A DNA stretch of 63,978 nucleotides, filler included, from Klebsormidium nitens (GCA_000708835.1; 7 parts of 7 records of this genome joined end to end with filler, not necessarily neighbours in it), one strand, 5' to 3'. Counted from the whole stretch's first letter, positions 1-21,665 are shown. Numbers and translations: made by a program. Notes: generated by a model not told the origin, from the letters alone.

Positions 1-253
1 CTCCTTCTCCGCCTTCTCCCCCTCCACTTCACCCGTTCTGGAGGCTTCGCCGCTCTCTCCTCCAGGCTTCGACTTCTCTGCGCCTCCCTGGAATTCCTCC
101 AACGCTCCCTCCACCACCTCGGCACGCTCACCGGACGATTTAGCCCCTACGCCAGGCCCCTGCTTCGCTTTCGTCTCCTTGCGTTTCTCCGTTTTAGCCC
201 CTTCTTCCGGCCCCCGCGCTGTTGTTTTCCCCTTGTCCTTTGCCTTCGACGTT

Positions 254-2160
254 TCAGCCCCTCCCTGGGGCCCCTGCGCAGCCCTTGTAGTGCGGCGCGC
301 TGCATCGCTCTTCCCTTTCTCTCGCGCCTCCCGTTCGACCTGCTTGGGGGGCTTCCACCGTTCTTTATTTGGGTTTGGGTCATAGACCTTGGTATCACGT
401 CGGTCCACGACGTGCTCTACAGCCTCTTGCAGTGGGAGTTTGTCGTCCTCATTTCGGATGCCTCGGATCCGTTTTGCTAGGTCCAAGTCTTTTTTCATCA
501 GAGTCTTCCGCTTTCCGTGTGCTTGGCAGAATACAGCGTCTCCGAACAGCCCCACGACGAAGTCCTGACTTGCCTCCAACAGGGCGTCCAACGCCGACGC
601 CTGCCACCTGCAAGATAGTCATCAAGACATCAGTGCAAAGCTCGAACATAGTCTAGTTTATCTCCCGCATGATGTCCGGAACCCCGCCAATGTACCCGCT
701 TTCGGAGAATAGCCGGTCCACGGCTGGAGTGTTGCAGAGTTTGTCACTCATGATATCCAAAATCTCAATGATGCGCCTACTTTCGGAGATGGCCCGGCCG
801 CAGTCTTGTCAGCGATTACTTTCGGAAAGCTGGCTGCTGGATCGGATCATGGGCCCAGAGCAAAGCAGACCGCATGCTCCCAGAACCTTGAACTTAATAG
901 AGAAAGCTCTTCAGTCCATAATAACGACCGCCCACATCATCAAAAAACTTACCTGAGGTCTTGTTGTTTCAAATACGTGCTGCACAGGCGCTTCACGATC
1001 CGAGCGAATGTGCTTTTTGGAATGAGGAAGTCCGTGCTCTTCTGGTACTTCCTGATTTCTCTGAGCGCTAAGGTGCCCGGCTTGTACCGGCGCGGCTTCT
1101 TCTCGGGCCGCGGGGGCGTGATCGCCACCGATGATTTCCGCTTGGCTCCAACCACCGCCTTTCCACTGCCTCCCTTTTCGAGCGTTTGCTTCCCCTCCCC
1201 AGCTGCCGGCTTCCCGATGGCGCCCGTCGGAGCCACTTTCTTCTCTTTTTGGGCACCCCCTGAGCCCTTCTGCCCCGTGGCCCCTGCTGCCTCCGGCTTG
1301 CCTGCAAGCAACGCCGCCCCAGCCACCGGCTTCTTGCCCCCCACCACGCCCCAGACGCTATTTGGCTTCCGACCTGTTGCTTTGCTTCGCCGCTTCTTTT
1401 GAGGCTGCTTGCCGGCCGTCACGAGTTCTCTCGAGGTCTTTCCGAAGCTTTCTAATGCTGCCTTGTGCCTCCTGAGCTGCTCCGCTGGGTCCATTTCCCG
1501 ACCAGGATCTCCCAACATCGACTGCAGCTCCCCCCCTTCTTCTTCCTCTTCAACCTCTTCGGGCGCTTCCTCCCCTCGTGCATGTTGCTTAAACATCATC
1601 TCGGCTTGCAGCTCCGATTCGGTGGGCGCATCGGGATCGCCTTCCCCCGCCGCATTCAAGTGTCCGCTTTTCTGAGGGTTGTCGTCGTCAGGTTCTGAGT
1701 CTCCGAAGGGTTTCTCAAATGGGGCATTCCACCTTACAAGCTCCTCAAGTTCCGCCATGTATTCTTCTGGGCTTATAACGCCCCGCTCCTTTCGGACTTC
1801 TTCCGGACTCGCCCCTTCCTCTGTCTGCATGGTCTCTCGCGGAGGAGATTGCTCCCCGTTGAGCTCTGCAAACTTTGCTTGATAATGAGCTTCCGCCTCC
1901 GCTTTTTTCTCGGGGGACCACTTGTTTTGCGTAGCAAGAGTTTCCACGTATGACAGATAATCCTCTAGTCCCCAATCGGCATGAAGGCCAAACTCGTCCA
2001 CCTCTAGTATGTCGATTGCAGGTTCGGACTCAATCGGCGGGACTTGCGCTCCCCCCGGGTTCTCCGAGTCACCAACAACTTCATCCTCCGGCGCGGCCAC
2101 CTTCTCCGCTTGGTGGCCCCGTTGCAATCTTTGTCGCATGCTGATGCGCGGCCTTTGCAA
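254..2160 (-). CDS. Histone H3-like (CenH3-like) protein A with ~350-aa acidic/basic N-terminal extension and C-terminal tail; 2 exons (2160..953, 607..254)
   Basis: Exon 1 ends [49 protein letters not shown] with donor AG|GTAAG at 952. After acceptor TTGCAG| at 608, exon 2 reads [49 protein letters not shown], completing the histone fold. The 3' end is uncertain: in-frame stop at 254-256, while another frame stays open to the window edge. Confidence 0.88.
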
Positions 2161-3390
2161 ATGAAGGAAGCGTTGGAAGCTTGCGGCTGATCGGAGGCGG
2201 CGCCCTTTAAGCGAGAGAGACCACGAAAAATGATGTTGTAAGGCAGACTTTTGACGAACTTGCGATGGATTGTTCGATGTTAGGGTTTGCTTAGGGTTTC
2301 GTGCATGCGAAGGCGAATGTCACGCTCCCGCTCTTTTACTTCATTTTCGACGATATAGCTCCTGCAGCCTATGTCGGTCGACTCAAGGCTCACAAAATCG
2401 AACCCGGTCGAAAGTCGACGATTAGCGGGTCCTACACCTCTGCTGCAGCCTGTCAAGCTATCGAAATCGAACGCAAATTACGAAACGCCTTGGATAGACT
2501 TTCAAACCCGGCCCATGCACGGCCAAATCTCTGGTTGCTTGCATGGTAGGGGTCAAAGTTGGAAGGCGCTCAAAACAGCCGCCACCATCCATTGGCGTTG
2601 CTTCCACTGCGCTTGATAATGAGAGCNNNNNNNNNNNNNNNNNNNNNNNNNNNNNNNNNNNNNNNNNNNNNNNNNNNNNNNNNNNNNNNNNNNNNNNNNN
2701 NNNNNNNNNNNNNNNNNNNNNNNNNNNNNNNNNNNNNNNNNNNNNNNNNNNNNNNNNNNNNNNNNNNNNNNNNNNNNNNNNNNNNNNNNNNNNNNNNNNN
2801 NNNNNNNNNNNNNNNNNNNNNNNNNNNNNNNNNNNNNNNNNNNNNNNNNNNNNNNNNNNNNNNNNNNNNNNNNNNNNNNNNNNNNNNNNNNNNNNNNNNN
2901 NNNNNNNNNNNNNNNNNNNNNNNNNNNNNNNNNNNNNNNNNNNNNNNNNNNNNNNNNNNNNNNNNNNNNNNNNNNNNNNNNNNNNNNNNNNNNNNNNNNN
3001 NNNNNNNNNNNNNNNNNNNNNNNNNNNNNNNNNNNNNNNNNNNNNNNNNNNNNNNNNNNNNNNNNNNNNNNNNNNNNNNNNNNNNNNNNNNNNNNNNNNN
3101 NNNNNNNNNNNNNNNNNNNNNNNNNNNNNNNNNNNNNNNNNNNNNNNNNNNNNNNNNNNNNNNNNNNNNNNNNNNNNNNNNNNNNNNNNNNNNNNNNNNN
3201 NNNNNNNNNNNNNNNNNNNNNNNNNNNNNNNNNNNNNNNNNNNNNNNNNNNNNNNNNNNNNNNNNNNNNNNNNNNNNNNNNNNNNNNNNNNNNNNNNNNN
3301 NNNNNNNNNNNNNNNNNNNNNNNNNNNNNNNNNNNNNNNNNNNNNNNNNNNNNNNNNNNNNNNNNNNNNNNNNNNNNNNNNNNNNNNNNN

Positions 3391-5319
3391 CTAGAAAGGC
3401 AGAGAAGCACGCCAAGGGGCAGGCGGCCGCACTAGCTGCATTCCAGGCAGCGAGCAAAGCTGCTCCCCCTCAAATGAAAAAGGCCTCTAACAGGAAGTCC
3501 TTTGCTAAGCTCGGGCCAACGGGAAGGCCGAAGCCTGGTGCCGCGGTGCTCAAGCTACCAGGGGGAAGCAGCAAGGATAAGGGGAAAGCTCCAGAGCAAG
3601 GTGGCCCCAAGAAGGCACCAGCACGGGACACACCCACCAAGAAGCCGCCAGCAGGTATGAGCTTCTGAACGCGTTGCAAATTGCCGGGCCTCTTTTTGTC
3701 AGCTCAATGCCCTTGACTTCTGCAGTTTAGCTTAGCGGGTGGTATCCCAAACAGGTTGCATGAGCGGATTGTGGTATATGGGCTGTAGAAGTTGAGCTCA
3801 AAAGTGACCGGTTCATGAGCGATCTAGGGTTAGGTGCGAGCCAATTGTCCCTCAACATGCTGCTTGGGCGCCCCTTGGTACACCAACTGCCAAGATGTGC
3901 TCAATGCTTTGTACCTTAGCAATTTCAGCTGGGAGTTTGTTCAAAACTTGGTGCATGCTCTCGTTTTAGAGTGGTGGGCGCTCACGCTGATTGCAATGCA
4001 ATTGGTTTATTGCAAAAACAGAGCTGGTGGTGAGTTTGTTCAAAAGTAGGTGCATGCTCGCTGTGCCAGGTTTGAGGCTCTTTTTGTCAGCTCATTGCAC
4101 TTGGTTTGAGCATTCTCAACGAGCGGGTTGTTTCCCAAACAGGGTGCATGAGCAGATAATGGTATATGGGCTGTAAAGGTTGAGCTCAATTTGATCAGTT
4201 GGTGAGCGTTCAAGGCATATTTTGGGAGCGGATTCTTCCTCAAAACGTGATGATTGGGCGTCTCTCGGTACACCAACTGCCAACTTGTGGTCCTTTCACT
4301 GGTTTCATAGCCGTTCAGCTAGATGTTTCTTCAAACCTAAATGTATGCTCTCATTTTAGTATGGTGGGCTCTTGTGTGGAACGTAATGCAATTGGTTTGT
4401 TGCAAGATATAAACACTTTGTCTCTTCAGCAGGCAACAAGCGCAAGGCGCCAGAAGGTCCAGCCCCCACCTCGAAGCGGGATCCGAAGAAGCCGCATCGG
4501 TACAGGCCGGGCACCCTAGCGCTCAGGGAGATCCGGAAGTACCAAAAGAGCACGGAACCTGTCGTCCCCAGGCTCTCGTTTGGTCGCCTCGTGCGGGAGC
4601 TGTGCGATACGGAGTGGAGGAAGCGGGGCGATCGGGATTACAACCTGAGGTTAGAATCTATTTTAAACTGTATACTTGAGTGCCTTGTTCGAATTACTAC
4701 GTCGGGCTGTCAAGTGGAGCTTCAAGCTGGTCGAAACGAGCATCTTTATCGAAGATTTGTGGTATCTAGTATCTGCCTGAGCTTAAACGAGCTGCCCAAG
4801 ATTGCCGTTGAGCTGGCAGATAAACAAAATTTGCTCGCGCTTGCACTTTGATGATGTGGGCGACAACCTTCTTTACGAAGGAAGCGGGAATTATCTAGCA
4901 TATCTAGCGCTGCAAAACGCATGCAGGCTTTATTGCACTGGCTGACAGAACCAACTCCCAGAGTCTCTCTGCTCTGACAACTGTCCTCTCTACTCGAACG
5001 GTCCATTTCCAATAGTGCGTAAGCTATTGGTATACTTGAAAATGATACGGGGTTGGAAAACTGTCCAATATCCAAGGATCCTAACCCTCAGACCCGATTC
5101 TTTTTCAGGTGGCAGTCGTCCGCTCTTGACGCGCTTTTGGAGGCGAGCCAAGACTTCATCGTGGGCCTCTTCGGGGACGCCATCTTCTGTGTTGCGCACG
5201 GCAAGCGCAAGACCCTTCAGGTGAAGGACTTGGACCTGGCGCGCAGGATCCGCGGGATCCGCGACGACAACGATAGACTGCCTCTGCAAAGGGAGGTGGA
5301 GCACGGGCGCTCCTACGAC
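3391..5319 (+). CDS. Histone H3-like (CenH3-like) protein B; exons <=3391..3654, 4433..4649, 5109..>=5319 (both ends in gaps)
   Basis: Spliced translation: ...KKPPAG|[72 protein letters not shown]|[57 protein letters not shown] introns at 3655..4432 and 4650..5108; the second is at the same codon position as in gene A. A Gly-rich tail may continue after the gap to about 6031. Confidence 0.88.
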
Positions 5320-6342
5320 NNNNNNNNNNNNNNNNNNNNNNNNNNNNNNNNNNNNNNNNNNNNNNNNNNNNNNNNNNNNNNNNNNNNNNNNNNNNNNNNN
5401 NNNNNNNNNNNNNNNNNNNNNNNNNNNNNNNNNNNNNNNNNNNNNNNNNNNNNNNNNNNNNNNNNNNNNNNNNNNNNNNNNNNNNNNNNNNNNNNNNNNN
5501 NNNNNNNNNNNNNNNNNNNNNNNNNNNNNNNNNNNNNNNNNNNNNNNNNNNNNNNNNNNNNNNNNNNNNNNNNNNNNNNNNNNNNNNNNNNNNNNNNNNN
5601 NNNNNNNNNNNNNNNNNNNNNNNNNNNNNNNNNNNNNNNNNNNNNNNNNNNNNNNNNNNNNNNNNNNNNNNNNNNNNNNNNNNNNNNNNNNNNNNNNNNN
5701 NNNNNNNNNNNNNNNNNNNNNNNNNNNNNNNNNNNNNNNNNNNNNNNNNNNNNNNNNNNNNNNNNNNNNNNNNNNNNNNNNNNNNNNNNNNNNNNNNNNN
5801 NNNNNNNNNNNNNNNNNNNNNNNNNNNNNNNNNNNNNNNNNNNNNNNNNNNNNNNNNNNNNNNNNNNNNNNNNNNNNNNNNNNNNNNNNNNNNNNNNNNN
5901 NNNNNNCGGAAGATGTGGATACGGGTGGCCGGGGCCTTGGTGGCGGGTCTCCGGAGAAAGGATCTGGTGGTGCTGGGGGAGTTAGTGGTGCGTCTGCCTG
6001 TCTGTTTCGATTAGGTTTGTTAGGGTTTTGATCTGCCGGTTTCGCAACGAACGATCGTGTCAGTTACATTTGTTTATGGTGTATTGCGTGGGCAAGCTTT
6101 CTTTGCCGCACATTTTGCAGTAGCGTCATAAAAGACCTAAGTAAGACAGGCTAATGCCTTAAAGACTTGAACAAGATTGATATAATTGACACATCGTAAC
6201 GGCATCCTTTCGTTGTATTCACGTGCTTTGTCTCGAACAAAAGTCCGTCTCGGAGTCGCGCTCCTGTGCCATATCCAAATGTAGCCATGAGTATTAATGC
6301 GAGCATCATATACATAAACGATTCTGTTTGGGAACTTTGTAG

Positions 6343-8510
6343 ATTCTGCGCCTCCTCCTGAGTTCTTCAATGTCAAGATCGACGTCTCCGCGACGCTAGC
6401 CGCTAATGCAGCGGCTTTGGACGGCAGCCCAGCATACTGCCAGCTGTACAGCACGTGGCGGCAGGCGTGGCAGGGAGAGCTGACCCCGGACGGCCGAGTG
6501 GCCATCGGCGTTATGGTCAACTTTTTGGAAGGCGAACGGCGGAAGGCCATCCGCTCAGGTACCCTACTACGTATGCTCATTGGAAGCAAGTGTTTGCAGC
6601 CTTGGAATTTGGAGTTCTCCCGTTGCAAGCATCATTCAACAGTCAAACTCTTCCAAGCTATTTTGAAGCATTTGGGTGATTGTAGTAGACTCCAGCACCT
6701 CGTTCTCCCGAATCGCAGCGTTTCCAATATGACAAAAAGATCGACGTTTCAGGAAATCTTGCGCGTACCTTAGCTAAAGCGGGGCATATCAAATTTGGAC
6801 TGTGTAGCTCGTTTCTTGGAAATGATGCGGGCGATTCATGACTCTGAAGTCTGCGTTTACATCCCTGCAGCAGCTGGCGGTGAGGACGCCGGGGACAGGT
6901 GGAGGCTTCGGCTGAGAAACATCCACGAGCTGTTCTCGAAGGGGACGGCGAAACGGGGGCAGGGGGTTTTAAACGAGGCGCCAGCGGATTCGAGATGGGG
7001 AGCGGGGCCGGAGGGGCGGACTGTGTCCCTTGAAGACGCAACTCTGTATGTCCTCACGGCCCGAATGGAACAAGAGGAGTGGGTCTCCCCACCCTTGCAC
7101 GTCATCGACTGGAGGTCGCAGAGGAAGCAGTGGTCCAAGGAGGGGCTCAGTGAAGCGGCGCAACAGGAGATGGAGGTGGAGACGGTGGCAGCCGTGCTAA
7201 GAAAGCTCCCGGTCTTTGTGTTAGAGGGGTTAGGGCCGTACTATTCGGCAACGCAGCTAAAGTACGCCACGGGCACCAACTCCCACGTTCTAACACTGTA
7301 CCGCTTCATCCGGGACGCGAAGCGGCTGGGCGGAAGGGACCGGGAGAAAGACGAGCCGGAGTTTGATGGGTTCGAGCTGAAGGGAGGCCTTCCATTGGCG
7401 GGAAGGCCGACGGGCGCGCTGCCGGACCCTAACCTGCTTCGGGCGATTGGGTACGACGGTGCCCTTCTAGATGGAGGAGCGGCAGGCGCGGCTTCGAGTT
7501 CGAGTGGGGCGATCACCGTGGCCGCAGCTGCTCCGCAGCTGATCGTCCAGCCTGGGGAGATGTTTGCGACCGGCAGAGCGCCCGACGAGCTCGCCAAGGT
7601 GGTCGTGCGGACGGCACTTTGGAAGGAGCTGCCGTTGGAAGAGACTATGCAGAGGGCGGTGTACCAGTGCGAGGCTGCCGGAGGCGCTCATCTGGAGCTC
7701 AGGAGAAGCTTCATCCGGATCTTGGCCGACACGCTGAATGGCGCCGACCCACTGGCGGCTGGGCGGAGGGACGAGGAAGGCGGGCGGAACGCAAGCGAGC
7801 TGGAGAAAGGAGAACTTCGTGGGGAAAGCGGGTCATTGGAGGAGGAGGAGGAGGAGGAGGCGGACAACGGGGAAGGGTTGGAAGACTACGAGTCCGAGGA
7901 TGACGCCGGGTCGGTGGATTTGGAAGCGGACGACGACGAGATGGTGCCGCGCTTCCTCAACGAAAAAGAGGGCCGGGACACGTACGGTCCCGCGCCAGTG
8001 CGGGGGCTGGGAGACATGGGGCGGGGCTTCTGGCAGGACTTCGAGGTTCCGGACGAGTTGGTCATGATCCAGACCAACTACGATCCGGAGCTGGCGGAAA
8101 AGTTCCTCGCCAGGAACAACCTTTGGAAGGCCTCCATGTTGTCCAGAATCTTGCCCGTCACCGTCCAGTTCAACACTCCTGCCGAGGAGGTGTTCTTCGC
8201 CGAGGCGGTCATCCGGACGGCCTTCCCGGGCATGCAGGAGCACGGTCGGTCGCTGCACATGCAGGCGCTGCAGGTCGCCAATGGTGCCCCAATAGAGGCG
8301 ACCGATCACGGCACGAGCGAGCAGCTGGCCCGGATTGCGTGGCGGCGGCGGGCGGAGGAGGAAACCGAGCCTGACGACGGCATGATGCTGACAGAGGCTG
8401 AACGGGAGTGGAAAAGGAAGCGTCTCGAGGACCAGGCCCTGCTGGGGGAGCGCGCGGAGTATGAGATTGCGGCGGCCGCGATCGATTACAAGCGGCAGAA
8501 GAGGACTTAG
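6343..8510 (+). CDS. Unknown multi-exon protein with acidic tract
   Basis: 571-aa open frame 6795..8510, GC-rich from about 6870 after a CTGCAG acceptor. Upstream exon about 6343..6557 (TTGTAG acceptor, CAG|GTACC donor). Poly-Glu/Asp segment. No family recognised. Confidence 0.6.
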
Positions 8511-9735
8511 AGTCGTTGTTTCCGTAGGGATTTTGATTGGTACGTAGTTAGGTTCGAGTGTGTTTAGGCTTGGCGCATGATGTCCAAAAGTCGCTTAGAG
8601 CATGGGCGTTTGGAAATGACGCGTTAGGCCGTAGATGACGTCCTGCAGAACACAATTCTGACTGTATGTGTGTTTTTTGCTTTTAGGGTTTTTGCAGACT
8701 TGTTTGATGTTTGTATAAGGATCGTACTAGACAAGTTTCGTGCCTTGGCAATGGACCGCCAGTGCTTTGAAGCCGATAACGTGTCCACGAATGCAATAAA
8801 AACAAGCTTCCCTTTTTGTTTGCACGCCGATGATCAGCGCGCTCTCCATCATCATGTTCCAAATATGTTTGGTATTTCGATCAAAGAGAACATCGACCTT
8901 CGTCATGGTTAGTAGCACATTTGTAAACTATACGCGTCGATCCCTGGTTATGTATGATGACAATTCATATAAAAAATTGATACATATAATAGGAGCATGT
9001 GAGGAACCGATCACATGATTTTATGACAGTCGTTTGTCCGTGGTTATGGTAATAATGTACATCCAAACATGTACCGTACGCACAAAGTAATACGCAGAGC
9101 TGATTGAGCATGCATATCGTAGACTAGCTAGGTGTTTTTAAATCACGAAGCATACTCAACTCCGAATTGCGGCGCATGCACATGCCACAACGTATACGTC
9201 TGATTGACTGCAATAATACGAAGTAATCCATCTTTCTAAATTTGAANNNNNNNNNNNNNNNNNNNNNNNNNNNNNNNNNNNNNNNNNNNNNNNNNNNNNN
9301 NNNNNNNNNNNNNNNNNNNNNNNNNNNNNNNNNNNNNNNNNNNNNNNNNNNNNNNNNNNNNNNNNNNNNNNNNNNNNNNNNNNNNNNNNNNNNNNNNNNN
9401 NNNNNNNNNNNNNNNNNNNNNNNNNNNNNNNNNNNNNNNNNNNNNNNNNNNNNNNNNNNNNNNNNNNNNNNNNNNNNNNNNNNNNNNNNNNNNNNNNNNN
9501 GTACATAGTCCCGGCTGTTGAACGAACAAAAAATCTCAGCGCGGATGGTTCCAACATCGGCGCTCTTTCCATAGTATTAATATTGACGGCATGCATGACC
9601 AACTCGTTGGATCACTATGCCACCATTCAATTGTAATTTTACGCCGCGAAGTTGCTGCTTATTATTTGGCCAGTAAAGCGCCGCTAAGTTCGAGCATGGT
9701 ACAATTTAATAGAGACATTGTTTGATTGTTCACCC

Positions 9736-12700
9736 TCATCTAAAGTAGAGGTTTCTGTACACTAGACGTTTGTTATGCGTGAACGTGTGCTTGGGAACCA
9801 TCATTTCTACCGACTTGATGCTACTGATGGAGAGAACCTGGCAATAAGGCGTGCCTTCTGGTCGCCCCGGCATCCGAGCCCACTCTAATTGCGGACACTT
9901 TGTAGCATCCAAGAAACCAACCTCGTTATACCATCGCACGAACACCAGCTCGTGCGGCACCTTGGTAGGTACCCTTCGCCTCAAAGCATTATCCCACACG
10001 GACTTCCGCTCGAACGCTCTGAAAAACATATGGGCCTTCCCGTACCACGTGTGGTTCACCGGGTCGTCTGGAGAGTCGGACGCGAAGGCCAAGTCGCTGA
10101 GGACCACGCTCCCGTGGAAGTCGGCGCTCGCTCTCGCCTGCTGAAGCCGGTCTCGGCCTCCAACATGCGGTACCACGTAGCACGAGTTGACCACCTCAAT
10201 CTGCAAACGGGAGCGGGTTTCAGGGCCACTATTCACAAACAATAGCGTAGCAGTCTGAACAGTGTGCCAAAGATAAAGCCGTCATCGAAGCATTACTAGC
10301 AACAAGGAAACCACGATATTGCATGTTGTTCCGAGTCCGATGCACGACTGCATTCTGCTCACACGATCAGCGAGTTTGTCGTCGAGGTAACCCATAAGGT
10401 CCAAACCGCGAAGCTGGGCCGGCGGCAATTGCGCCTCCCCGGCGAAGTACAGAGCGAGAGCTGTGGGGAGCTCCGACAGAAGGGGGATGCTGCGCATCCA
10501 CTGGAGGAGTAGGCGGCGTTGCTCCCAGCCTGCGCATGCGTACAAAGTTCAAAGGTCGTAAGTAAAAGATCGTGTAAGCGTGAAACGGCGTTGTGACATC
10601 GCGCACAATTTCCAAAAACAAGCGGCGCTGCGGCGATTTTGATATGATCCGGAGCAGCTGCTTTCCTGGCACAGGATATAAAAAGATCTGAACAGATAGC
10701 TTCTTTTGTAATCTGCGCGCGTGGCTTCTCAGTACGATCTCAAGCATGCAGCTTGAAGGTACTCCGGACTCTATTGCAGGTAGTAAGAGTCGAGCCAGAA
10801 CTCACCTCGAACGAGGAGGTCATTCGCTCGGTCAGGCGAAACCAACAGGTTTGGGATGAAGATTGTGAACAGCTCGGTCTTGTTCAACCGGTTCTCTCCA
10901 CCGGTCGAGTTGGCATCCAGCGCAGCAAGAGCAGCTGAGTCGTACACATCCCGCCTCTGCAACTCCGTCAGCTCCGCCCGCTGGGCCTCGACGGACTCTA
11001 TTGCGAGGGTGTTGTTCCAACTGCGGTTCCAAAACAAAGCGACACATTTTTGAGAAATGTATACAGTATGAAAGACGATGCTTTCAACCCTGCAAGCGCC
11101 GCTCAAAGCAATAGCTCATCAGTAGGCAGCCCGATANNNNNNNNNNNNNNNNNNNNNNNNNNNNNNNNNNNNNNNNNNNNNNNNNNNNNNNNNNNNNNNN
11201 NNNNNNNNNNNNNNNNNNNNNNNNNNNNNNNNNNNNNNNNNNNNNNNNNNNNNNNNNNNNNNNNNNNNNNNNNNNNNNNNNNNNNNNNNNNNNNNNNNNN
11301 NNNNNNNNNNNNNNNNNNNNNNNNNNNNNNNNNNNNNNNNNNNNNNNNNNNNNNNNNNNNNNNNNNNNNNNNNNNNNNNNNNNNNNNNNNNNNNNNNNNN
11401 NNNNNNNNNNNNNNNNNNNNNNNNNNNNNNNNNNNNNNNNNNNNNNNNNNNNNNNNNNNNNNNNNNNNNNNNNNNNNNNNNNNNNNNNNNNNNNNNNNNN
11501 NNNNNNNNNNNNNNNNNNNNNNNNNNNNNNNNNNNNNNNNNNNNNNNNNNNNNNNNNNNNNNNNNNNNCCCACTCGCAGAGGGCCACCGCCCACTCCGCA
11601 AGAACGTCCTTGCTGCGAATCTTACAGATTCCGACCACCATTAGAGGGAGAACCTGCAGGATCGCTTTCCACTCGTACGCCGGCGTGTTGCAGGGCTTGG
11701 TGAAGAAGTCCTTCTTGGAGGGGAGACGCAGGCCGCTTGGCCGGTATTTCAGGTACACCTGCACAAATGGAACCGCGCGGAATGAGGACAAGCAGTTTAC
11801 TTAGGAGAGGCAGGTTCGATAATGAAACGCAACATCTGTTTGCTTGGGAAACAGCATGTCGGGAGCGAATCGGACAATGCGTCAGAATGTGTACAATTTA
11901 AAACACACCTGATGCAACCGCACGTCCATGAAACTCATGAACGCGGGTTCCCCCATCGGCAAGGCCCTCCCGACCGCCCCAAGGATCCCGATGAAGTGGT
12001 GGCCGAGGATGCCACCAAAGATGGTATGAAGATCGTCAGGGGCCATCTTGCTGTAGACGTTGTTCCAGAAGCGGTCCGAGTAGTTCCACTCCCAAAACCA
12101 CGGCTGCATACAGATGCGAGGAGCTGTTCACAAGCTTTCCAAAACATCTCACAAAGGCGCCTTGTTGGAAATGATGTGACGGCCGTAGCTTATTCTAAGA
12201 CGGAGCAATAGGTTGACTCGCCTGATTTCCTAAACACCCACACATATCGATATTTTGGAAACGGTGCGTCGCTCACGTTGATCCTCACCTCCGAAAAGTG
12301 GATGCCATGCTCCTTGTTGAGCTCCAGGATCCTTGCATGGGGCGCCCTCTCGTCGCGCTTCCGCTGCATCTGTTGGACGACCCCCCACATGTCGTCCTCT
12401 AACCGCGCGTCGTACGCACCTTGGTTCGCCCGAGTCACCAAGTGCATCTCGGTTGTTGGGACCAGGCAGGAGTCGCAAGAGTTGGACCTTACCCCCGAGA
12501 TTGATGAAGCCTCGCCGAGATCTTTGGAGATCACATAGATGAAAGGAACAGCGTTGTGCTGTGCGCCGTTAGGGTCCGTCACCTGAAACCCCGTGTAGGA
12601 CGCTTCCCGAGTGGTTTCGAAGACAATGCTCATGGACCAGTTCATGAAGAACCGGCAGGTCTCCTTCAACCCCTCTGATCGGGGTTTGTAGCCAGGCCCG

Positions 12701-14321
12701 GGCCAGTCAGCGTCACCTCGAACGCTGGGGAGCAGAGCGACCAGTTGCATGCCGCTCTTCTGGTTGTACACCTCCCAAGAGAAGTTGCCCAACGATATGT
12801 ACATGGGGTAAGCCGACACCCGCCCGAGCCCGTCCAAGGTGGTCTTGTCTAGGTAGACGATGATTGGGACGATGATGTGTTTGCCAACAAATGCGGGATC
12901 GTTGTCCACCTGAAGAAGAGGAAAAGGCAGACTGCATCAGGGTGGATGAAAACACGCGAGGCAAAAGACTGCAATATCGATCTTAGATAAAAGAAGCACC
13001 GTCAATTGCGTCACCTTGCATACTAGTAACACGTCTCTCCAAGTCAACTTGCTATAACCATCTGCTCTCATTAGATTGCAAAGAGACAACTTCGATAGTT
13101 CCTTGCCTCGTCCTGAGCGTCGTTCCAAAACGTTCCGGTACTCGGATGATTGTACTCCCGGATGACGATAACCTTCCCGTCCGCTCCCCGCCTGATCTCT
13201 TTGATTTTCACCTGCGAAGCATCGAGGCCCGGCCATTCTCAATTTGCCACTAAAAGACGATGATGGCAAGTATCTCTCACCCGGAACTACCGTACTTGTT
13301 TGCCTCCCTCGTATGCGAAGTGTACTTAGCAGCCCTAATTCAAATCCTATCAGTGATCTCGCGAATCACGATCATAGGAGTTTGACGAAGGCCCACCTGA
13401 GGCTCGAGAACAAACCCCTTCTTGTTGTTCACGTCGGCGAACATCTTGCGGATGAGATCGAGGGCTGGCATGTAGGACAGTAGGATTGGTTCGGGGTCCT
13501 TGCCTGCCCTCTGCAAGTTGACAATCCTGGAGCCCTGCACGACAGACGCGAGCGTGAACAATTGATGTCACCCCCTATAGTGCGGGGAATGATGCCCCAA
13601 ACAAATGCTAGTAGCTTACCAGGTCCAATGCTCCGACTCCTTTACTTGCCGGTCGATTTCCCATTTCCAGCGCTTCAGGAAGGTCTTTGAAATGGTGCAC
13701 GTGCTCAGCTTTTCTTAGAAGCGGATTCAAATCACCTCACGGAGGGAGCAAGACTCCAGAACATGGACCGAGAAAGTTGCGACAGATGATTGAACTCACA
13801 TCACCAACGGCAGCTTTCATGATTGTCAGCTCCATATCTCGGTGAGACTTCCACTTTGCCAAGCACTCCTCCAAGCGGTAGCGGTCGTCCTTCATGAGCT
13901 TCAACCACTCGTTCCTTGCCCGGTTAGGCAGCTTGGTACCTCCCGCACCAGCTGAATTCATCCAGAGGACCGTCTCCATCGCAGAGTCAAAGGGTTGCCC
14001 TGAGCTCCCGACGCCCGTGCCGCCATTGTCTAGCTCGTCTTCCTCGTGAGCTGGCAGCTGCACCTCAACATCATCTTCAATGATAAGGTCAGCAGTTTCA
14101 TCGTAAAAGGGACCTTCTGGTGGTTGAACATAGTTGTCGTCAAACTCAAAAACGACAGGCTCGACTTGGCCCCCTGCTCTCTCGGCCTCTTTCATTGCTC
14201 TCACTACTCGGCATGTTACTGATTGTTCTTGGTGCCATTGCAGGGCAATCTGCGTAGCTAATTTGGTGTTGCAATATCCGCAGATGATTCCTTCCCCGTC
14301 TTTCCCAGCTGTAGATGCCAT
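9736..14321 (-). mobile_element. Plavaka-family (CMC-related) transposase gene, multi-exon, with N-terminal C2H2-like zinc finger
   Basis: N-terminal CGYC..ALQWHQEQSVTC. Core IVPIIVYLDKTTLDGLGRVSAYPMYISLGNFS...LVALLP, CDSCLVP, and APDDLHTIFGGILGHH. C-terminal DFHG/ELVFVRWY segment. These match the Plavaka transposase pattern. Exons join at canonical GT-AG sites (e.g. HFSE|PWFW); one exon region lies in a gap. Confidence 0.8.
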
Positions 14322-15552
14322 CACTAAGGAGAGGAGTAAACACAGAACCAACATCCTATGCTAGGAGCAGCTCCCTTCATACTCTCATCTATGGTAGGCA
14401 GCACTCTTATCGCAAAGATTCAAAAACCTTCATTCTGCACAGTCTTTCTGATCTGAAGCGCAACTGTCATCTAGAATGGACTCTATGATGCTGAGCGCCA
14501 ATTCGGGGAAGCTTGCACTACAAGTTCGATGGTTTCAACAGGATTGAATCATTCCGCAGGAGCTGGCACCTGATAACACTTTAACAATAGTAGAGTTTAC
14601 TCCCAAGCTGGAGAAAGAGGCCAATGGCAACCAGCTTCTCAGTGGCGCTCCAAGCTATCGTTGGAGGCGGACCTTCGCGCTACTCCCTTGAAGGTAGTGG
14701 GACAATGTGATTAGTCAGATATGTAGAAGGTAGCCTGTCACATGAGCCATCCTAGTTGCTTGGAGCGAGTTAGCCAGGTGTTACTCTGTGAGTACCTAGA
14801 TCGAGTTCCGCGCCCTTCTCATCGACGGTCTGAGATCGTAGACGTGAAATCGGACGGTGCATGAATCTGTGGAAAGAATTTTCGGGCGTCGACGAGGCTT
14901 GACCGTCCGATGTTGGGACAAAAAGCGATCGACGGTTCACGCTCAAGCCTCCGCCGAAATTCAAATTTCGGTCTGGAGCCGGTCANNNNNNNNNNNNNNN
15001 NNNNNNNNNNNNNNNNNNNNNNNNNNNNNNNNNNNNNNNNNNNNNNNNNNNNNNNNNNNNNNNNNNNNNNNNNNNNNNNNNNNNNNNNNNNNNNNNNNNN
15101 NNNNNNNNNNNNNNNNNNNNNNNNNNNNNNNNNNNNNNNNNNNNNNNNNNNNNNNNNNNNNNNNNNNNNNNNNNNNNNNNNNNNNNNNNNNNNNNNNNNN
15201 NNNNNNNNNNNNNNNNNNNNNNNNNNNNNNNNNNNNNNNNNNNNNNNNNNNNNNNNNNNNNNNNNNNNNNNNNNNNNNNNNNNNNNNNNNNNNNNNNNNN
15301 NNNNNNNNNNNNNNNNNNNNNNNNNNNNNNNNNNNNNNNNNNNNNNNNNNNNNNNNNNNNNNNNNNNNNNNNNNNNNNNNNNNNNNNNNNNNNNNNNNNN
15401 NNNNNNNNNNNNNNNNNNNNNNNNNNNNNNNNNNNNNNNNNNNNNNNNNNNNNNNNNNNNNNNNNNNNNNNNNNNNNNNNNNNNNNNNNNNNNNNNNNNN
15501 NNNNNNNNNNNNNNNNNNNNNNNNNNNNNNNNNNNNNNNNNNNNNNNNNNNN

Positions 15553-18193
15553 CGCCTCTCAACTGCGCAGCACAAGGTGTATAGCTCCCTAACATCCCAT
15601 CACCGCAAAAGCTGTAACATTCTGCCGCAACAACAAGGAGGCAAGTATGGTGAGAGGGGCTGCCAATACCAATGTTTTGAGGGCGGTGCCACCCAACCTA
15701 GGCGGGCCCCAATCAAACCGGATCTGGAAGGCGCAGCAGGCAGAAAAGGCCAAGGAGGCAAAAAGAAGGAGGGAGCAATTTGAGGAAGAGGCCGCAGCTG
15801 AGGCGGAGCGCCTGAAGGCAAAGAAGAGCAAGCAACCTGCCGGCAGCAAGAAGAAGGCCACTAGTAACGGGTCCAATGCACCAGGTTACAAAGCGAGGTC
15901 TCAGGCACTACCTCCTGAAGAAGTAGATGAAAACAATGCGGCCTATGGCTGGGGTGCTGCTGGGAACGAGGAGGAAATTCCCGAGTTGGAACCTGATGCA
16001 ATGCCTTTTGCTAATGATGAGGATAGGATACCTGAAAAGGAGGACGAGTCATCTGAGGATGATGGGGGAGAAGAAGGACAGGGCGGAGGAGAAGATGAAG
16101 GCAGCGAGGAAGAGGAAGAGCGGTTGCTTCGTATTCCGAGGCGTGCTCCCAGGTTGCCTCCATCCCAGATCCCCCAAACAGGTGGTCGTACATCCGAGGC
16201 AGCAAGCAACCGCATGGTGCTTGCTCTCCGTAAGTTGTGCCACTTACAGCTGATTTCCCAACACTGAGCTTGTTCTGCAAGAATTGGAAATGATGCATGG
16301 GAGCCTGTACTTGGGTGCTCTCCAAAAAAAACTTGTTGTCTGCTTGATTTTAAATTGTTGCTTGTACAGTTGGATATCTGAAATGGTGCGTTGACGGAAC
16401 AGTTGTGAGATTGGATTGGTTAAGAGCTCTAAGAAGCAGCATCTGGTCTCCAATCAATGTTGCTTGGACTTTAGGCTTTCAGTAATGCACAAGCTCTATT
16501 CTTTGTTTGTACATAACATGTTGCGGCAAAAGGTTTACATGTTCAATGCTTGCAGGGAAGGACAACTCAGAAGCTGGAGGTGCTGCCGGACGTGCCATTG
16601 TGATTGGCGGGGATGTCGACGAGCAGTATCTGTTGCAACCAGGCAGAGGAGAGGAAACGGTGAGCATGGGTAAAGGGGAACCTGCTATGAAATGCTAACC
16701 TCTCAAAGTCCGAGCTTGTTCTCAATAGACCACAAGGCTAGACGTTGTGCTCTATGCATCATCTTTGCTCTTTGCATCCGTTTGCCTACGGCTGTTTGCT
16801 TGCTATCAGTGGCCTCCGTTTGCTTATGGCTGACTGCCTGCTCTTGCCTCTCTGCAAATTTTTCTTCGCACCGCTTGCTTTTGACAATCTGGTTGCTCTT
16901 GGCTCTTGTCTCATACAAGGATTTGCGTGGATCATGAAAGCGGACTTACGTTTCTGCAGACCCCCGAGAGGGCGCTTGCCAAAGTGGCCCTGATCGGCTG
17001 GGCGGTGGGGTGCGACCCTTACCCCAAGCCAGAGGACCTGATGTACTACCGCGCCGTGATGGAGGGAATGGAGCGTTGTGAGGTGGACGGGGAGAAGAAC
17101 GATCCGAAGGAGTTCTTTGGGGCAGCCACGTACGCCTACCTGATGCACTGGCACACCAAGAGAATGTCCAGTGCCAGGGCGGAATACTCTGGCGTCAAGA
17201 ACATTCGGGGTGTCTTCAACGCCACCCATCACTTCACTCCAGACAGATGCAAGACAGACGAGGCGTTGGAGGAGCTGCTGGCCAAAGGGCGAGAGCTCCT
17301 CAAAGGTGAGCGATACGAAAGCTTCTGATCTATACAGATGTGCTGCTGTCCTACGCTCGATATCCAACTGCGCAGCTGCATCTGTTTAGTTGGAAATGCT
17401 GCGTTGAAGGTCCTTGTAGAACTTTGCCGCAAAGCGATAGCAACTTAGCGAATGACGTTCGTTTCTTGCAGACGGCGCGTGGCATACCGACGGCGACGGC
17501 AACCCGTTCTCCTCTGACGTGTTCGTCAATATCGCCAACGAGGTCTGGTCGAGCGACGGACAGTGCCTTGTGACCTGCAAGCAGCTGGCCTGGACCTGTC
17601 TCGTGGTAAGTCGTACATTTAAAGAAGCCTTGAAGTATCAGGAAAACTTGGATGTGAAAGTAAGCTCTAGTGCGACTGCCCAGAAAGATCCTCAACTTGA
17701 GCCGATGTAGCAGATCAGATGTTCGAGTGCTACCCTTCGTCTCTCTGAGCAAGTTAAATGTGTCGCGACTGGCAAGCTGTCCACCCGTAGTGGACGATTC
17801 CATCAAACATCTCGTATTGCCATGGACAGCACCTGACATTTGTTCCGTGCAATTTCTATGTAGGTTCAAACCCATCTGCAAAACAAGAAGCTGTCGCTGG
17901 ACCGCGACGTCAACGCACGGGCGATGGACAAGCAGGGGGCGGAAGTGATGGCGATCTTGAAGAAGGCGAAGGCTGACAAAAAGAAGATGGCCCTGAAGTT
18001 GAGGCCAGTGAACAAGGCGGTGGATCTCGCTGCCGCAACGATAGTGTACTTAAAGAGTGGCGGGGGTAAGAAGAAGAGCAAGAAGAAAAGGGCCGCTAAA
18101 GATCTTGAGAGGGATGTAGATGTCTGGGCCGACATGGAAAAGATGAACGAGGAAGAAGAAGAGCAGGCGCCTGCAATTGACGCACAACCTTAG
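15553..18193 (+). CDS. Unknown multi-exon protein transcribed divergently from the transposase (candidate second element ORF)
   Basis: GC-rich open segments at 15647..~16230 (K/E-rich), ~16556..16670, ~16960..17305 (ERALAKVALIGWAVGCDPYPKP...), ~17471..17605 and ~17877..18193 (basic/acidic tail), separated by AT-richer GT-AG-bounded segments. Confidence 0.6.
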
Positions 18194-18419
18194 GGTATAA
18201 TGATTTAGGGTTTGGTAAACCCTAAAACCAGTCTCAGCCAGTGGGTAAGAACATTGTTGAATTTGTGGATAAAGAATCACGTTCCACCTGTCCTGTCAAG
18301 CTTGATGCAATGTAGGCACAAGTCATATTCACATTTTATGGACACAAATGCTATGTTGCATACCATCCAGTCAACCGACGCATCATATCCAAATATGACC
18401 ATGTAACGGGTGCATTTTG

Positions 18420-18775
18420 GAAATGCCGCGGCATGGAGAACCGCCGGGCACGGTGCCGCCGATGCTGCCTGTCAGATGCCGTTTGGCACGCCGGCAATTG
18501 TATGCGATGTGCCGGGCATTGGCCGCGCTGGTACACGATGAATATGCCGTGGTGCCGACCGATGCGCCGCGCTACTACACGCTGATGATGTCACGGCGCC
18601 GGCATACAGCCGGACCGCCTGCCGTGCGCCTTCACGCCCGGACCCACGCAGGCACCACACCTATGCCGGAAGGGTGCTGAACCGCTTGCCGGACGCGTGC
18701 AAGCGGTGTCGCCGGAGGATTGCCGACAATCGCAAGCAGTGCGCCGCCCAGTATTTCCGGCCGCCGCACATCATG
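18420..18775. repeat. Tract dense in TGCCG/CGGCA pentamers (candidate subterminal repeats)
   Basis: At least 12 TGCCG/CGGCA occurrences in about 350 bp, and 5 more CGGCA at 23583..23650. Confidence 0.5.
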
Positions 18776-18875
18776 NNNNNNNNNNNNNNNNNNNNNNNNN
18801 NNNNNNNNNNNNNNNNNNNTTAATTAATTAANNNNNNNNNNNNNNNNNNNNNNNNNNNNNNNNNNNNNNNNNNNN

Positions 18876-19432
18876 GCAGCTACGGGCGTCAAAAGAAAGA
18901 CATGGCGAAGGAACTGCTGGAGGTACTGGGCTTTCCGCACCCCCTCGCCCACGAGCACGTCACCAGGACCCTTGCAGAATTGAGAGAGGAGCTGGCGGCC
19001 ACCAGCTACTTCCGAGATTACTCTGAGATCGTGAAGCTGTTCTCTGCACGCGCGCTCCCAAGCGAGGACGTCCTGGCGGAGCAAAAGTCGGCCACGATTG
19101 CCTTGAACCACGTTTTCTCGGAGCTTGGGTTGCAGCTCGAGGCCGTGCAGACTGGCCGATCGCCGCGGACCGCGGAGGGGCGGAGGGGACCCCGTGTTTA
19201 TGGGGGGTGGAAGCTGCAGCGGAAGCCAAAGACACGGACTCGGCCAGTCGATGGGCCGGTGGGGGTAGATCTCATGGCCCAGCTGTTGAAGTTGCGATTC
19301 AAGGATTCACGTGCTCTGAAGTCGCGAATCATTCCCGCAGCATTGAGAGAGTACGTTGACGGGGTTCCCTTTAGGTGGTTGGCGATGGTGACCCAGAATG
19401 AAGAGTGTCAGATTGTAGTTCGGGCTTCTTGA
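18876..19432 (+). CDS. C-terminal fragment of a virus-like protein, possibly an origin-binding (UL9-like) helicase tail
   Basis: Open from the gap to 19432 and GC-rich. The pattern LLEVLGF...KLF...LNHVFSELGLQL resembles the C-termini of NCLDV origin-binding proteins (weak, by eye). Confidence 0.3.
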
Positions 19433-19962
19433 TTCATGGAATGCTTCAAGGTAGGATTGAGTGCAGGTATTTGAATTCGCATTACAAAATGAGTTATTGA
19501 CAATCAGATGAGGGCTTCTCACTGCGCCATATTGTGACGATGAGGGTTTCCGGTCAGACTATGCTTTTATATTTGATTTGCAAAGCAAGTGGCTACTCAA
19601 GTTTGACCACACCTTGTTGATGATTATAAGGAACCCTCACGTATGCCAGGTAAAGCCGTATGCAAGGTGTGGTCCACCGAGAAAAGTGTAGATTAAGACT
19701 TTGGATTCATACCATTTACTTCGATTGTGGCCATTCGAAACATGTCAAAACATGGCCGTCGGAAATGATTGAATTTGAGCACGCCTTTCTATGACAATGA
19801 TACGCGGCATTCTGTGTGGACTTGCTTGTGTTACACAATGGTGTACTTTGAGTGCAATATCATGACACCCGATGCTTCGAACATCCGTCTTTTGAAACCT
19901 GCGGGTTGCGTCGTACATGCTTAAGAAAGAAGCTCAGGTGAACGAAGCAGACTATCCCTCTG

Positions 19963-20406
19963 ATGGAGAAGCTCCCAGGTGGACGTATGCTATTCCGAGT
20001 TGTCGAGGTCAGCTTCGACGGCCGTCAGGAACGCATTCGCAAGCTTCGACCCGGACAAGAGCTCGTGCTTCGCAAGCATTCGGGGAACGGGTATGACGTA
20101 TATGCTATTGGAATATTTGACCCGGCGGATTGCGAGAATCCTTTGGGGTTCATTGCGCGCGACATTAAGGATCATCGAGTGTTCGAGATGGTCCGCCAGA
20201 GGTCGGAAATGCCGGCACGGGTGCATCGCATCAATCAAGGCAGAGGCCGACATGGGTTGTGGGGATTTACGGTCGCGATTGCGGACTGCGCAATCTCCTC
20301 TGTTGAGGCCTTTAGTACAAGCAGCAGCATGCCTCATGTTGAACCTGTCTTTGATGACAAGATTTGTCAGATCGTGATCAGACGGCGATCTGAGATTGGC
20401 ACATGA
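19963..20406 (+). CDS. HIRAN-domain protein
   Basis: FRVVEVSFDGRQERIRKLRPGQELVLRKHSGNGYDVYAIGIF...LGFIARD matches the HIRAN pattern (xVxGxxY...L..G..L.L.REP.N.YD..AI.V...LGYIPR). Confidence 0.75.
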   Translation: MEKLPGGRMLFRVVEVSFDGRQERIRKLRPGQELVLRKHSGNGYDVYAIGIFDPADCENPLGFIARDIKDHRVFEMVRQRSEMPARVHRINQGRGRHGLWGFTVAIADCAISSVEAFSTSSSMPHVEPVFDDKICQIVIRRRSEIGT

Positions 20407-20542
20407 GAGGTTATATAATGAGCGACTCGAGCAGAGGTTCAAGCCTTCAGAGGCGTACAAGCCTGAGATGTTATATGACCATCCAATAAAAGCATTGGTA
20501 CTTTTCGATTTTCTTTGTGCACCGTAACCAATAGTCGAATCC

Positions 20543-21187
20543 ATGGATACTATTCTTGGGTACCGCCCGCGGTCGCGCTCTGCAATTTTTGAGATGGATC
20601 GTTCTGTGCTACAAAGCGCTCGGTGTGCTATTATAAGAAGCTTTCAAGAATTTGGATTGCTTGAAACGGTTNNNNNNNNNNNNNNNNNNNNNNNNNNNNN
20701 NNNNNNNNNNNNNNNNNNNNNNNNNNNNNNNNNNNNNNNNNNNNNNNNNNNNNNNNNNNNNNNNNNNNNNNNNNNNNNNNNNNNNNNNNNNNNNNNNNNN
20801 NNNNNNNNNNNNNNNNNNNNNNNNNNNNNNNNNNNNNNNNNNNNNNNNNNNNNNNNNNNNNNNNNNNNNNNNNNNNNNNNNNNNNNNNNNNNNNNNNNNN
20901 NNNNNNNNNNNNNNNNNNNNNNNNNNNNNNNNNNNNNNNNNNNNNNNNNNNNNNNNNNNNNNNNNNNNNNNNNNNNNNNNNNNNNNNNNNNNNNNNNNNN
21001 NNNNNNNNNNNNNNTGAGTGTAGGTTCATGTCTCCTTCGCAAAATATGCGTAAGCAACCTCTTCAAAGACGCTCCGAGCATTGCCGAGCGCGACGACCTC
21101 GCGCGGAGCATGTTGCACACAGCAGCTATGGCACAGCGGACATATGAGAAGAAATTTAACCCGGATGGAACTCGGATCAAGTTTTGA
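20543..21187 (+). CDS. Tyrosine recombinase/integrase, catalytic C-terminus (centre in gap; 5' part probably degenerate)
   Basis: After the gap the frame reads SVGSCLLRKICVSNLFKDAPSIAERDDLARSMLHTAAMAQRTYEKK. This fits box II (xxLR[H/K]) followed by LA..M.H and the catalytic Tyr, as in PLV/NCLDV-type tyrosine recombinases. Confidence 0.6.
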   Translation: MDTILGYRPRSRSAIFEMDRSVLQSARCAIIRSFQEFGLLETVXXXXXXXXXXXXXXXXXXXXXXXXXXXXXXXXXXXXXXXXXXXXXXXXXXXXXXXXXXXXXXXXXXXXXXXXXXXXXXXXXXXXXXXXXXXXXXXXXXXXXXXXXXXXXXXXXXXSVGSCLLRKICVSNLFKDAPSIAERDDLARSMLHTAAMAQRTYEKKFNPDGTRIKF

Positions 21188-21329
21188 ACGGTTTGTAATT
21201 TGCTTGCCAATTGGGAGCTGCCTTCGAGACACTTGGATGCCTGTGAATGCGTCTAGATGTAGCGAGGGCACTCCAATTCCATCTGCCGTGTCTGAAGACT
21301 CAATTCGATTATCCTCGTGCTGCCATGCA

Positions 21330-21574
21330 TTATACGGAATCTTCACTGAAAAGCCGGCATCAAGAAGGCGCTTTAGAGTCCTCCGTTGACACGTATGCCC
21401 ATTCTGGTAGCGCGCAAAGGCTTGGGCTAGAAGGATTGCATCCCTATGTCTGTGGTAGTATCTCTTCGTGTAAGTCTTTCGAGCATCCGGATGCTTTTCA
21501 TAGAATTGCTTGATAGTTTTGCATACTTTGCAAGTGCAACAATCGTTCAAAGCGCTTTCGTCATGCGACTCCAT
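21330..21574 (-). CDS. Small basic hypothetical protein, divergent from Prim-Pol
   Basis: MESHDESALNDCCTCKVCKTIKQFYEKHPDARKTYTKRYYHRHRDAILL... has a virus-like composition; its 5' end is duplicated with the Prim-Pol unit. The coding 3' end is uncertain. Confidence 0.3.
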
Positions 21575-21665
21575 GCTGAGTACTACTATCTAAGGTAAGA
21601 TAATTTGCCTGACCCAACACCGAACGCACATGCGTTTGAACGGCCTCATTTAAAATCTTGTCAGA

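Follow-up and report, generated by a model that had tools for sequence, protein, structure and literature searches.

hAT transposons of the Dothideomycetes Pyrenophora tritici-repentis and Pseudocercospora fijiensis acquired histone H3 in the form of an intronless retrocopy, which was amplified and for the most part rendered inactive through repeat-induced point mutation (PMC6710886, PMC3538342). Plavaka DNA transposons carry chromatin-related genes of other kinds: a red-algal genome is dominated by giant Plavaka elements of 17–19 kb with three accessory genes, PAG1–3, which include SET/methylase and ParB-2OG oxygenase genes (10.1101/2025.02.11.637652), and basidiomycete Plavaka elements with TET/JBP were described by Iyer et al. 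2014, as cited in PMC12730594. Plavaka transposases have also been reported in streptophyte algae (PMC13519894). Here we analyse a locus of the streptophyte alga Klebsormidium nitens (GCA_000708835.1) at which a cluster of H3-like genes lies beside a Plavaka transposase gene, and we argue that the H3-like genes are probably cargo of a giant Plavaka lineage. The window, that is, the whole stretch of DNA that was analysed, is 63,978 nucleotides (nt) long and joins seven parts of the genome with filler; the locus corresponds to positions 2827–21601 of scaffold DF237958.1, identified by protein look-up via P0001, and coordinates are those of the window unless another locus is named.

The piece probably comprises most of a giant, autonomous Plavaka (KDZ/CMC-superfamily) DNA transposon. 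In its predicted layout, the transposase would be flanked on one side by a right-hand gene and on the other by a conserved accessory gene with an ORF of 571 aa, here called ORF571, and three clustered H3-fold genes of the C, A and B types. Two links would place the H3-like genes in this element. The first is between ORF571 and the transposase, which gene order ties firmly together. Metagenome contigs L006 (59 kb) and L007 (14.6 kb), found via the transposase, are collinear with the window at ~50–75% amino-acid (aa) identity over positions 6333–8525 (ORF571), 9722–14348 (transposase) and 14884–18186 (right-hand gene), and in L009 an ORF571 homologue (37% identity) precedes a transposase encoded on the other strand, which is also the arrangement of the window. 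The pair is likewise collinear in L012 and, up to a retroelement insertion in its transposase, in L013. The second link is between an H3-like gene and ORF571, a pair that two K. nitens copies and a second organism have in common. L012 (P0229) and L013 (P0097), both from JGI metagenome data, carry H3-like exons, the upstream block of ORF571, ORF571 and the transposase in the order and orientation of the window, at 40–60% aa identity to it. Over 8 kb these two contigs share 92.7% identity, with retroelement insertions at differing sites, and thus resemble two copies of a mobile element. L006, L007 and L009 extend to a point just upstream of ORF571 and no further, and are neutral on the linkage of H3. 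Since ORF571 is tied to the transposase and an H3-like gene is tied to ORF571, the H3-like genes are best placed as Plavaka cargo, and the simplest reading of the gene order is that they are long-standing cargo that expanded to three paralogues in Klebsormidium.

The cluster is repeated within K. nitens. Six more 'histone H3' paralogues of gene 1, the A-type gene of the window, lie on other small scaffolds, and loci L002–L005 share a unit in the order C-type (+), A-type (−), B-type (+) and ORF571 (+) at 77–93% nt identity; L010 is an extension of L005. The complete H3 histone fold has been kept, and the cluster has been amplified together with ORF571. It was found on at least five K. nitens scaffolds, where most copies are broken: all three H3-like genes have stops or frameshifts in L002, the B-type gene is frameshifted and the C-type gene has a stop in L010, the second A-type exon is absent from L004, and the ORF571 copy in L005 is frameshifted. 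The reading frames of ORF571 and of the three H3-like genes on the window scaffold stay open over all the sequence that is read.

Some further features of these copies were recorded. The A-type copy P0002 (L003 6513–8354) has a ~700-nt internal duplication that repeats the end of the tail and the αN–α1 exon. Retroelements lie in or beside the unit copies, with a gag/protease-like open reading frame (ORF) containing zinc knuckles at L002 458–4927 and a copia element at L004 1016–3589. The breakpoints of L002 and L004 are retroelement insertions, the gag/protease-like one in the left part of L002 and the copia element in L004, and are thus uninformative about Plavaka ends. Ty3-type elements with a PHD finger are present at L006 1–3072 and L013 12549–14912.

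Several observations weigh against placing the H3-like genes inside the element. No transposase was found in the fetched flanks of L002–L005 and L010, that is, in four of the five K. nitens copies. The homology of L005/L010 to the window stops at window position 9216, by a gap and before the transposase; nothing related follows in the next 9.3 kb, and this sequence beyond L010 contained no transposase and no informative ORFs. There are no inverted repeats of at least 40 nt in the window and no 12–13-mers common to the right end and the left parts. No terminal inverted repeats (TIRs) or target-site duplications (TSDs) were found at this locus, in which the left end of the scaffold very probably falls within the element and five gaps remain; because none were seen, it is collinearity alone that places the H3 genes inside the element. 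In addition, the H3-like gene of L013 is a pseudogene, in which TAG occurs in frame twice and the reading frame has a further problem. It is 69% identical to canonical H3 and is placed by the tree among canonical H3 sequences, outside the K. nitens clade, so that an independent capture at that place is possible; a single clade of the L013 and K. nitens H3-like genes was not rejected (approximately unbiased test, p = 0.21). A likeness of the L013 N-terminus to the K9 region of H3, seen by eye, was discarded, as BLAST backed the αN region only.

The collinearity between species could in principle also be host synteny around a domesticated transposase, with a Plavaka-derived gene and its neighbours inherited vertically in Klebsormidium-like algae. 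Such a block would fit the same gene order in several contigs, the absence of visible TIRs and the one transposase copy known in K. nitens. It does not fit the 92.7%-identical copies with differing retroelement insertions in one metagenome, the occurrence of the transposase family in public data as 51 clusters, of which several hold as many as 21 members, or the decayed cluster copies on different K. nitens scaffolds, and we regard it as very improbable. Cargo of a Plavaka lineage, the reading that we favour, had already been proposed in a preliminary description of the locus, which held that single-copy genes syntenic with the normal host CENH3 locus of related algae, other Plavaka copies without H3 genes, or a phylogenetic placement with canonical H3 would speak against it. 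The cluster is multi-copy and the Plavaka loci L012 and L013 carry an H3-like gene; on these points the proposal stands, and it is weakened by the missing TIRs and TSDs and by the four K. nitens copies without an adjacent transposase.

Genes 1 and 2 are arranged head to head, at 1–2139 (−) and from 2619 to beyond 5319 (+), respectively, and the shared region between them (2140–2618) forms a divergent promoter region. Exon 1 of gene 1 (953–2139, −) encodes a non-histone N-terminal tail of ~350 aa followed by αN, α1 and the sequence up to loop 1. It is separated by a GT..AG intron (608–952), in phase 2 inside the R83 codon, from the last exon (1–607), which encodes α2–α3 together with more than 150 aa of C-terminal extension and continues beyond the left boundary of the piece. 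The spliced model, complement(953..2139) joined to complement(1..607), gives at least 598 aa, with no stop at 254 or before the edge of the piece; an intact homologue in L011 encodes 640 aa. Gene 2 begins with an ATG at 2619 and consists of exon 1 (2619–3654, +), which encodes the N-terminal tail and is broken by a gap, exon 2 (4430–4649), which encodes the end of the tail, αN, α1 and a loop 1 with seven more residues than that of H3, and exon 3 (5109–5319), which encodes α2–α3 and the start of the C-terminal extension before it enters another gap. Introns 1 (3655–4429) and 2 (4650–5108) both have GT..AG ends, and intron 2 interrupts the R83 codon behind its second base (R|W), just as the gene 1 intron does. 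Intron 1 holds a tandem duplication of ~390 nt, with copies at 3690–4015 and 4078–4405 that are 76–82% identical.

Both ORF pieces match the Pfam Histone family PF00125, at 2.3e-11 for 949–2160 (−) and 8.7e-14 for 5053–5319 (+), with scores of 44.5 and 52.3 bits that exceed the curated cut-off of 26.4. At position 68, Gln is replaced by Ala in gene 1 and by Gly in gene 2, both genes have Trp at position 84, and loop 1 is longer by two residues in gene 1 and by seven in gene 2. The AlphaFold2 (AF2) model of the fold region contains helices at residues 22–35, 44–55, 62–93 and 100–110 that correspond to αN, α1, α2 and α3, and the best matches among solved structures (Foldseek, phmmer) are nucleosomal H3 chains. 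The model also has a confident additional helix across a conserved motif after the fold, of the type WKPPxQ[IV]ERE, which is kept in the A, B and C types and in P0079 and P0080. This motif belongs to C-terminal extensions that are missing from the preliminary description and that reach more than 150 aa beyond the fold in gene 1 and ~110 aa in the gene 2 types, as judged from L005. An exhaustive search with the last exon of gene 1 returned a wider motif-bearing family (P0075/P0225, P0076, P0079 and P0080) and the JGI protein P0097. Neither the first 240 aa of gene 1 nor a 140-aa right-hand ORF gave a usable match in an Atlas search.

A third H3-like gene, the C-type P0008 (303 aa, partial), lies to the left of the piece at DF237958.1 1–1383 (L001 13583–14965). 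It is arranged tail to tail with gene 1, and its loop 1 is longer still. A C-type gene follows the A-type gene also in L002, L004 and L005.

Contigs from the RNA-like runs X1 and X2 contain joints at 3655–4429 and 4650–5108 with GT..AG ends. One X2 contig spans intron 1 of gene 2 (joint 3648→4427, cut +6) with zero mismatches to the window, and the joint of intron 2 (4647→5107, cut +2) was observed in both X1 and X2. The gene 1 joint at 608–952 (605→951, cut +2) was observed in X1 on a contig that is ~92% like the window and is thus a paralogue transcript. Other joints with differing letters at the end of loop 1 show that paralogues are transcribed as well, while all three introns are present in the sequence of the DNA-like run X6. 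These results show that the H3-like genes are transcribed and spliced; the X1 and X2 evidence consists of contigs, whose depth cannot rank expression. The confirmed introns also bear on the idea of an endogenised giant-virus or virophage-like element with viral histones. Some giant viruses do encode histones (10.1101/2021.11.30.470311), but spliceosomal introns confirmed by RNA, a Pfam scan with no viral hallmark gene and IMG/VR scans with no relatives of ORF571 or the transposase make a viral origin barely credible. The gene structures on which the cargo interpretation builds agree with the preliminary description in most respects: the two head-to-head H3-fold genes, the substitutions at Q68 and F84, the loop 1 insertions, the common R|W intron and the predicted junctions of all three introns were all borne out by Pfam, the spliced models or the spliced contigs. 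Its count of two genes holds for the window, against three on the scaffold. Its spliced Plavaka transposase was recovered with its domain and conserved exon blocks, and the apparent intactness that it described is qualified by a gap that hides part of the gene.

Five assembly gaps interrupt the window (2627–3390, 5320–5906, 9247–9500, 11137–11568 and 14986–15552), of which those at 9247–9500 and 14986–15552 are intergenic. The gap at 2627–3390 lies inside the first coding exon of gene 2; a DNA contig from X6 runs in frame past 2626, and the L005 paralogue has one uninterrupted ORF over the matching stretch. The gap at 5320–5906 conceals the C-terminal extension and the stop of gene 2, as judged from L005 and from P0076, a near-identical ORF that provides the likely residues lost. 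By comparison with L005, the probable true lengths of these two gaps are ~370 nt and ~300 nt, compared with the 764 and 587 N written. The NCBI annotation on L001, the fetched part of DF237958.1, lists four genes: P0008, P0001, P0018 and a Plavaka protein with a model of 786 aa. The 403-aa ORF at 949–2160 (−) is 100% identical to P0001, NCBI 'histone H3 [Klebsormidium nitens]'. The P0001 model itself was rejected, its last ~20 residues deriving from a splice to the antisense strand of the adjacent C-type gene. P0018, an 806-aa NCBI 'histone H3', and P0021 of L005 fuse the B-type gene with ORF571 and are doubtful, given that L005 has a stop ~110 aa after the fold and that ORF571 homologues occur alone on ~2-kb contigs.

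The ratio of nonsynonymous to synonymous substitution rates (dN/dS) in the fold was 0.33 between A-type copies (window and L011), in which the tails had ratios of 0.64 and 0.82, and 0.14 between the A and B types, for which dS is saturated. The histone fold is thus under purifying selection, with dN/dS values of 0.14–0.33. Together with the conserved motif, the retained telo-boxes and the correct splicing of transcripts from an intact copy, these values argue against passive, dead cargo. Passive transduplication, in which an H3 gene was captured by chance and has no function for the element, has the fungal hAT elements as a precedent (PMC6710886, PMC3538342) and would fit the decay of most copies and the two in-frame stops of the L013 copy. 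It is countered by selection on the fold both between the A and B types and among A-type copies, by three diverged paralogues that share the additional motif and are spliced and transcribed from an intact copy, and by the retention of introns and an own promoter, unlike the intronless fungal retrocopies. We consider it quite unlikely that the H3-like genes, as Plavaka cargo, are passengers of this kind.

Six exact telo-boxes (AAACCCTAA) are present in the window, against a chance expectation of 0.07. The divergent promoter region of genes 1 and 2 contains two of them (2280–2299); one lies upstream (6020–6028) and one downstream (8683–8691) of ORF571, and a palindromic pair directly after the right-hand gene (18205–18225). 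The promoter pair recurs in L003, L004 and L011, a single copy is found at the same place in L005, and L002 has a single telo-box in the corresponding intergenic stretch. In L013, one telo-box lies ~520 nt upstream of the H3-like gene.

The ORF571 gene (6333–8510, +) consists of an upstream coding block at ~6333–6575 and a main ORF at 6795–8510. The upstream block is kept in L006, L007, L012 and L013 at 38–52% aa identity, with an ATG start in L013, and is probably a 5′ exon of the gene. Homologues of ORF571 have identities of 37–89%, the stand-alone ones on ~2-kb contigs accounting for 52–89%, and its dN/dS is 0.18. A metagenome scan with an ORF571 profile returned one locus. The AF2 model of ORF571 was unusable (predicted local distance difference test score of 41), and the Atlas search was blank. 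The Plavaka (KDZ/CMC-type) transposase gene (9736–14354, −) contains the Plavaka transposase domain PF18759 (7.9e-19) at 12190–12909 (−) and no fewer than nine exon-like blocks, spread over 9736–14354, that are conserved with L006, L007 and L012. The gap at 11137–11568 lies inside this gene, which is a candidate for an intact copy only. The right-hand gene (15647–18193, +) has multiple exons and is divergent from the transposase. The Pfam scan gave no match in the other large ORFs of the window, including ORF571 and the right-hand gene, and no TET/JBP, SET or ParB domain.

Classical CenH3 diagnostics are the replacement of Q68, the F84W substitution, a longer loop 1 and a divergent N-terminal tail. 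Genes 1 and 2 exhibit all of these, with Q68 lost, W84, two and seven additional residues in loop 1, and an N-terminal tail that cannot be aligned. A CenH3 would also be expected to end a few residues after α3 and to be a single- or low-copy host gene; gene 1 continues for more than 150 aa after the fold, and there are three genes per unit on at least five scaffolds, most of them broken. In an unrooted tree of 99 columns, built without any Klebsormidium CENH3, the K. nitens H3-like family forms one clade (support 94/90) that shares a branch with two plant CenH3 proteins (87/84). A-type proteins share 60% identity with Tarenaya HTR12 and 56% with canonical H3, and the corresponding values for the B type are 57% and 60%. 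Klebsormidium is not among the organisms covered by the kinetochore-survey supplement (PMC5579357). The CenH3-type substitutions are compatible with a rapidly evolving, non-canonical H3 and are, as sequence features taken alone, no proof of centromeric function. The CenH3-like identity assigned in the preliminary description therefore holds for the diagnostic substitutions and fails to extend to the long C-terminal extension, the copy number and the pseudogenes, and the phylogenetic check that it suggested yielded the branch with plant CenH3 but does not settle, on 99 columns, whether canonical H3 or CenH3 was the source.

The same data bear on the possibility of a host H3-variant or CENH3 family that was duplicated in a transposon-rich region beside a Plavaka insertion. 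The CenH3-type diagnostics, the common branch with plant CenH3 and the closer identity of the A type to HTR12 than to canonical H3 would suit a host family, as would the absence of a transposase near most K. nitens copies, the intact and expressed copies of the window, and the fact that no separate host CENH3 was found here. A host family would not be expected to comprise many copies that are mostly pseudogenes, or to carry an extension of more than 150 aa unlike CenH3. Nor does it account for an H3-like gene whose place and direction with respect to ORF571 and the transposase are the same in another organism's diverged element, or for the co-amplification of the cluster with ORF571, which four more contigs tie to the transposase. 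On balance, a host family appears unlikely, and we retain a Plavaka lineage with H3-like cargo as the probable explanation.

If the H3-like genes are Plavaka cargo, their proteins would probably pair with H4 and enter nucleosome-like particles. These proteins lack a recognisable canonical H3 tail and bear long charged extensions, so that host silencing based on the H3 tail would be unable to write on the resulting chromatin, on the element or at marked sites. Alternatively, the H3-like proteins might tether the transposition machinery to particular chromatin. An anti-silencing or targeting role of this kind is a tentative proposal, and a centromere-mimic role is pure conjecture. In its most specific form, which we put forward as speculative, the transposon would encode its own nucleosome components, with three H3 variants placed on the element or on chosen, possibly centromeric, chromatin and ORF571 perhaps acting as a chaperone, and would thereby evade silencing or steer integration. 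Chromatin readers and writers, and in some cases dead histone copies, are known cargo of transposons; a lineage that retained expressed and selectively constrained H3 variants in deeply diverged element copies would differ in that it manipulates chromatin at the level of the nucleosome. The CenH3-like features of a multi-copy, transposon-linked H3 advise caution in annotating CENH3 from those features alone, and the Klebsormidium case bears on how CenH3-like variants evolve. Klebsormidium is a cultivable model streptophyte alga in which tagging and chromatin immunoprecipitation may be feasible.

The H3-like cluster can be compared with three known systems. With CenH3/CENP-A/HTR12 it shares the H3 fold, the replaced Q68, W84, the longer loop 1, a tail unlike that of H3 and a weak affinity in the tree, but the K. 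nitens genes are multi-copy with pseudogenes, linked to a transposon and extended at the C-terminus by more than 150 aa. With the H3 captured by hAT elements it has in common that a DNA transposon carries an H3 sequence and has multiplied it, most copies being inactive. The superfamily is hAT in the fungi and Plavaka/CMC in K. nitens, and the fungal copies are very close to the host H3, whereas the K. nitens genes have 56–60% identity to H3, three paralogues, long tails, an extra motif, purifying selection and expression; they also have their own promoter and one or two spliceosomal introns, and are thus not intronless retrocopies. The giant Plavaka elements resemble the K. nitens locus in a size of 15–20 kb, the Plavaka transposase, several conserved accessory genes of chromatin-related potential and mostly degenerate copies, and differ from it in cargo, which in K. 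nitens comprises histone-fold proteins and two genes without known domains, and in host, which here is a streptophyte. The preliminary description regarded such a system as undescribed; no paper linking Plavaka with histone-fold cargo was found in the literature, and to that extent the claim stands, but the hAT-captured H3 and the chromatin cargo of giant Plavaka elements are precedents. H3-like Plavaka cargo is thus a variation on these two known kinds, a histone H3 carried by a DNA transposon and a giant Plavaka element with chromatin genes, rather than a new category.

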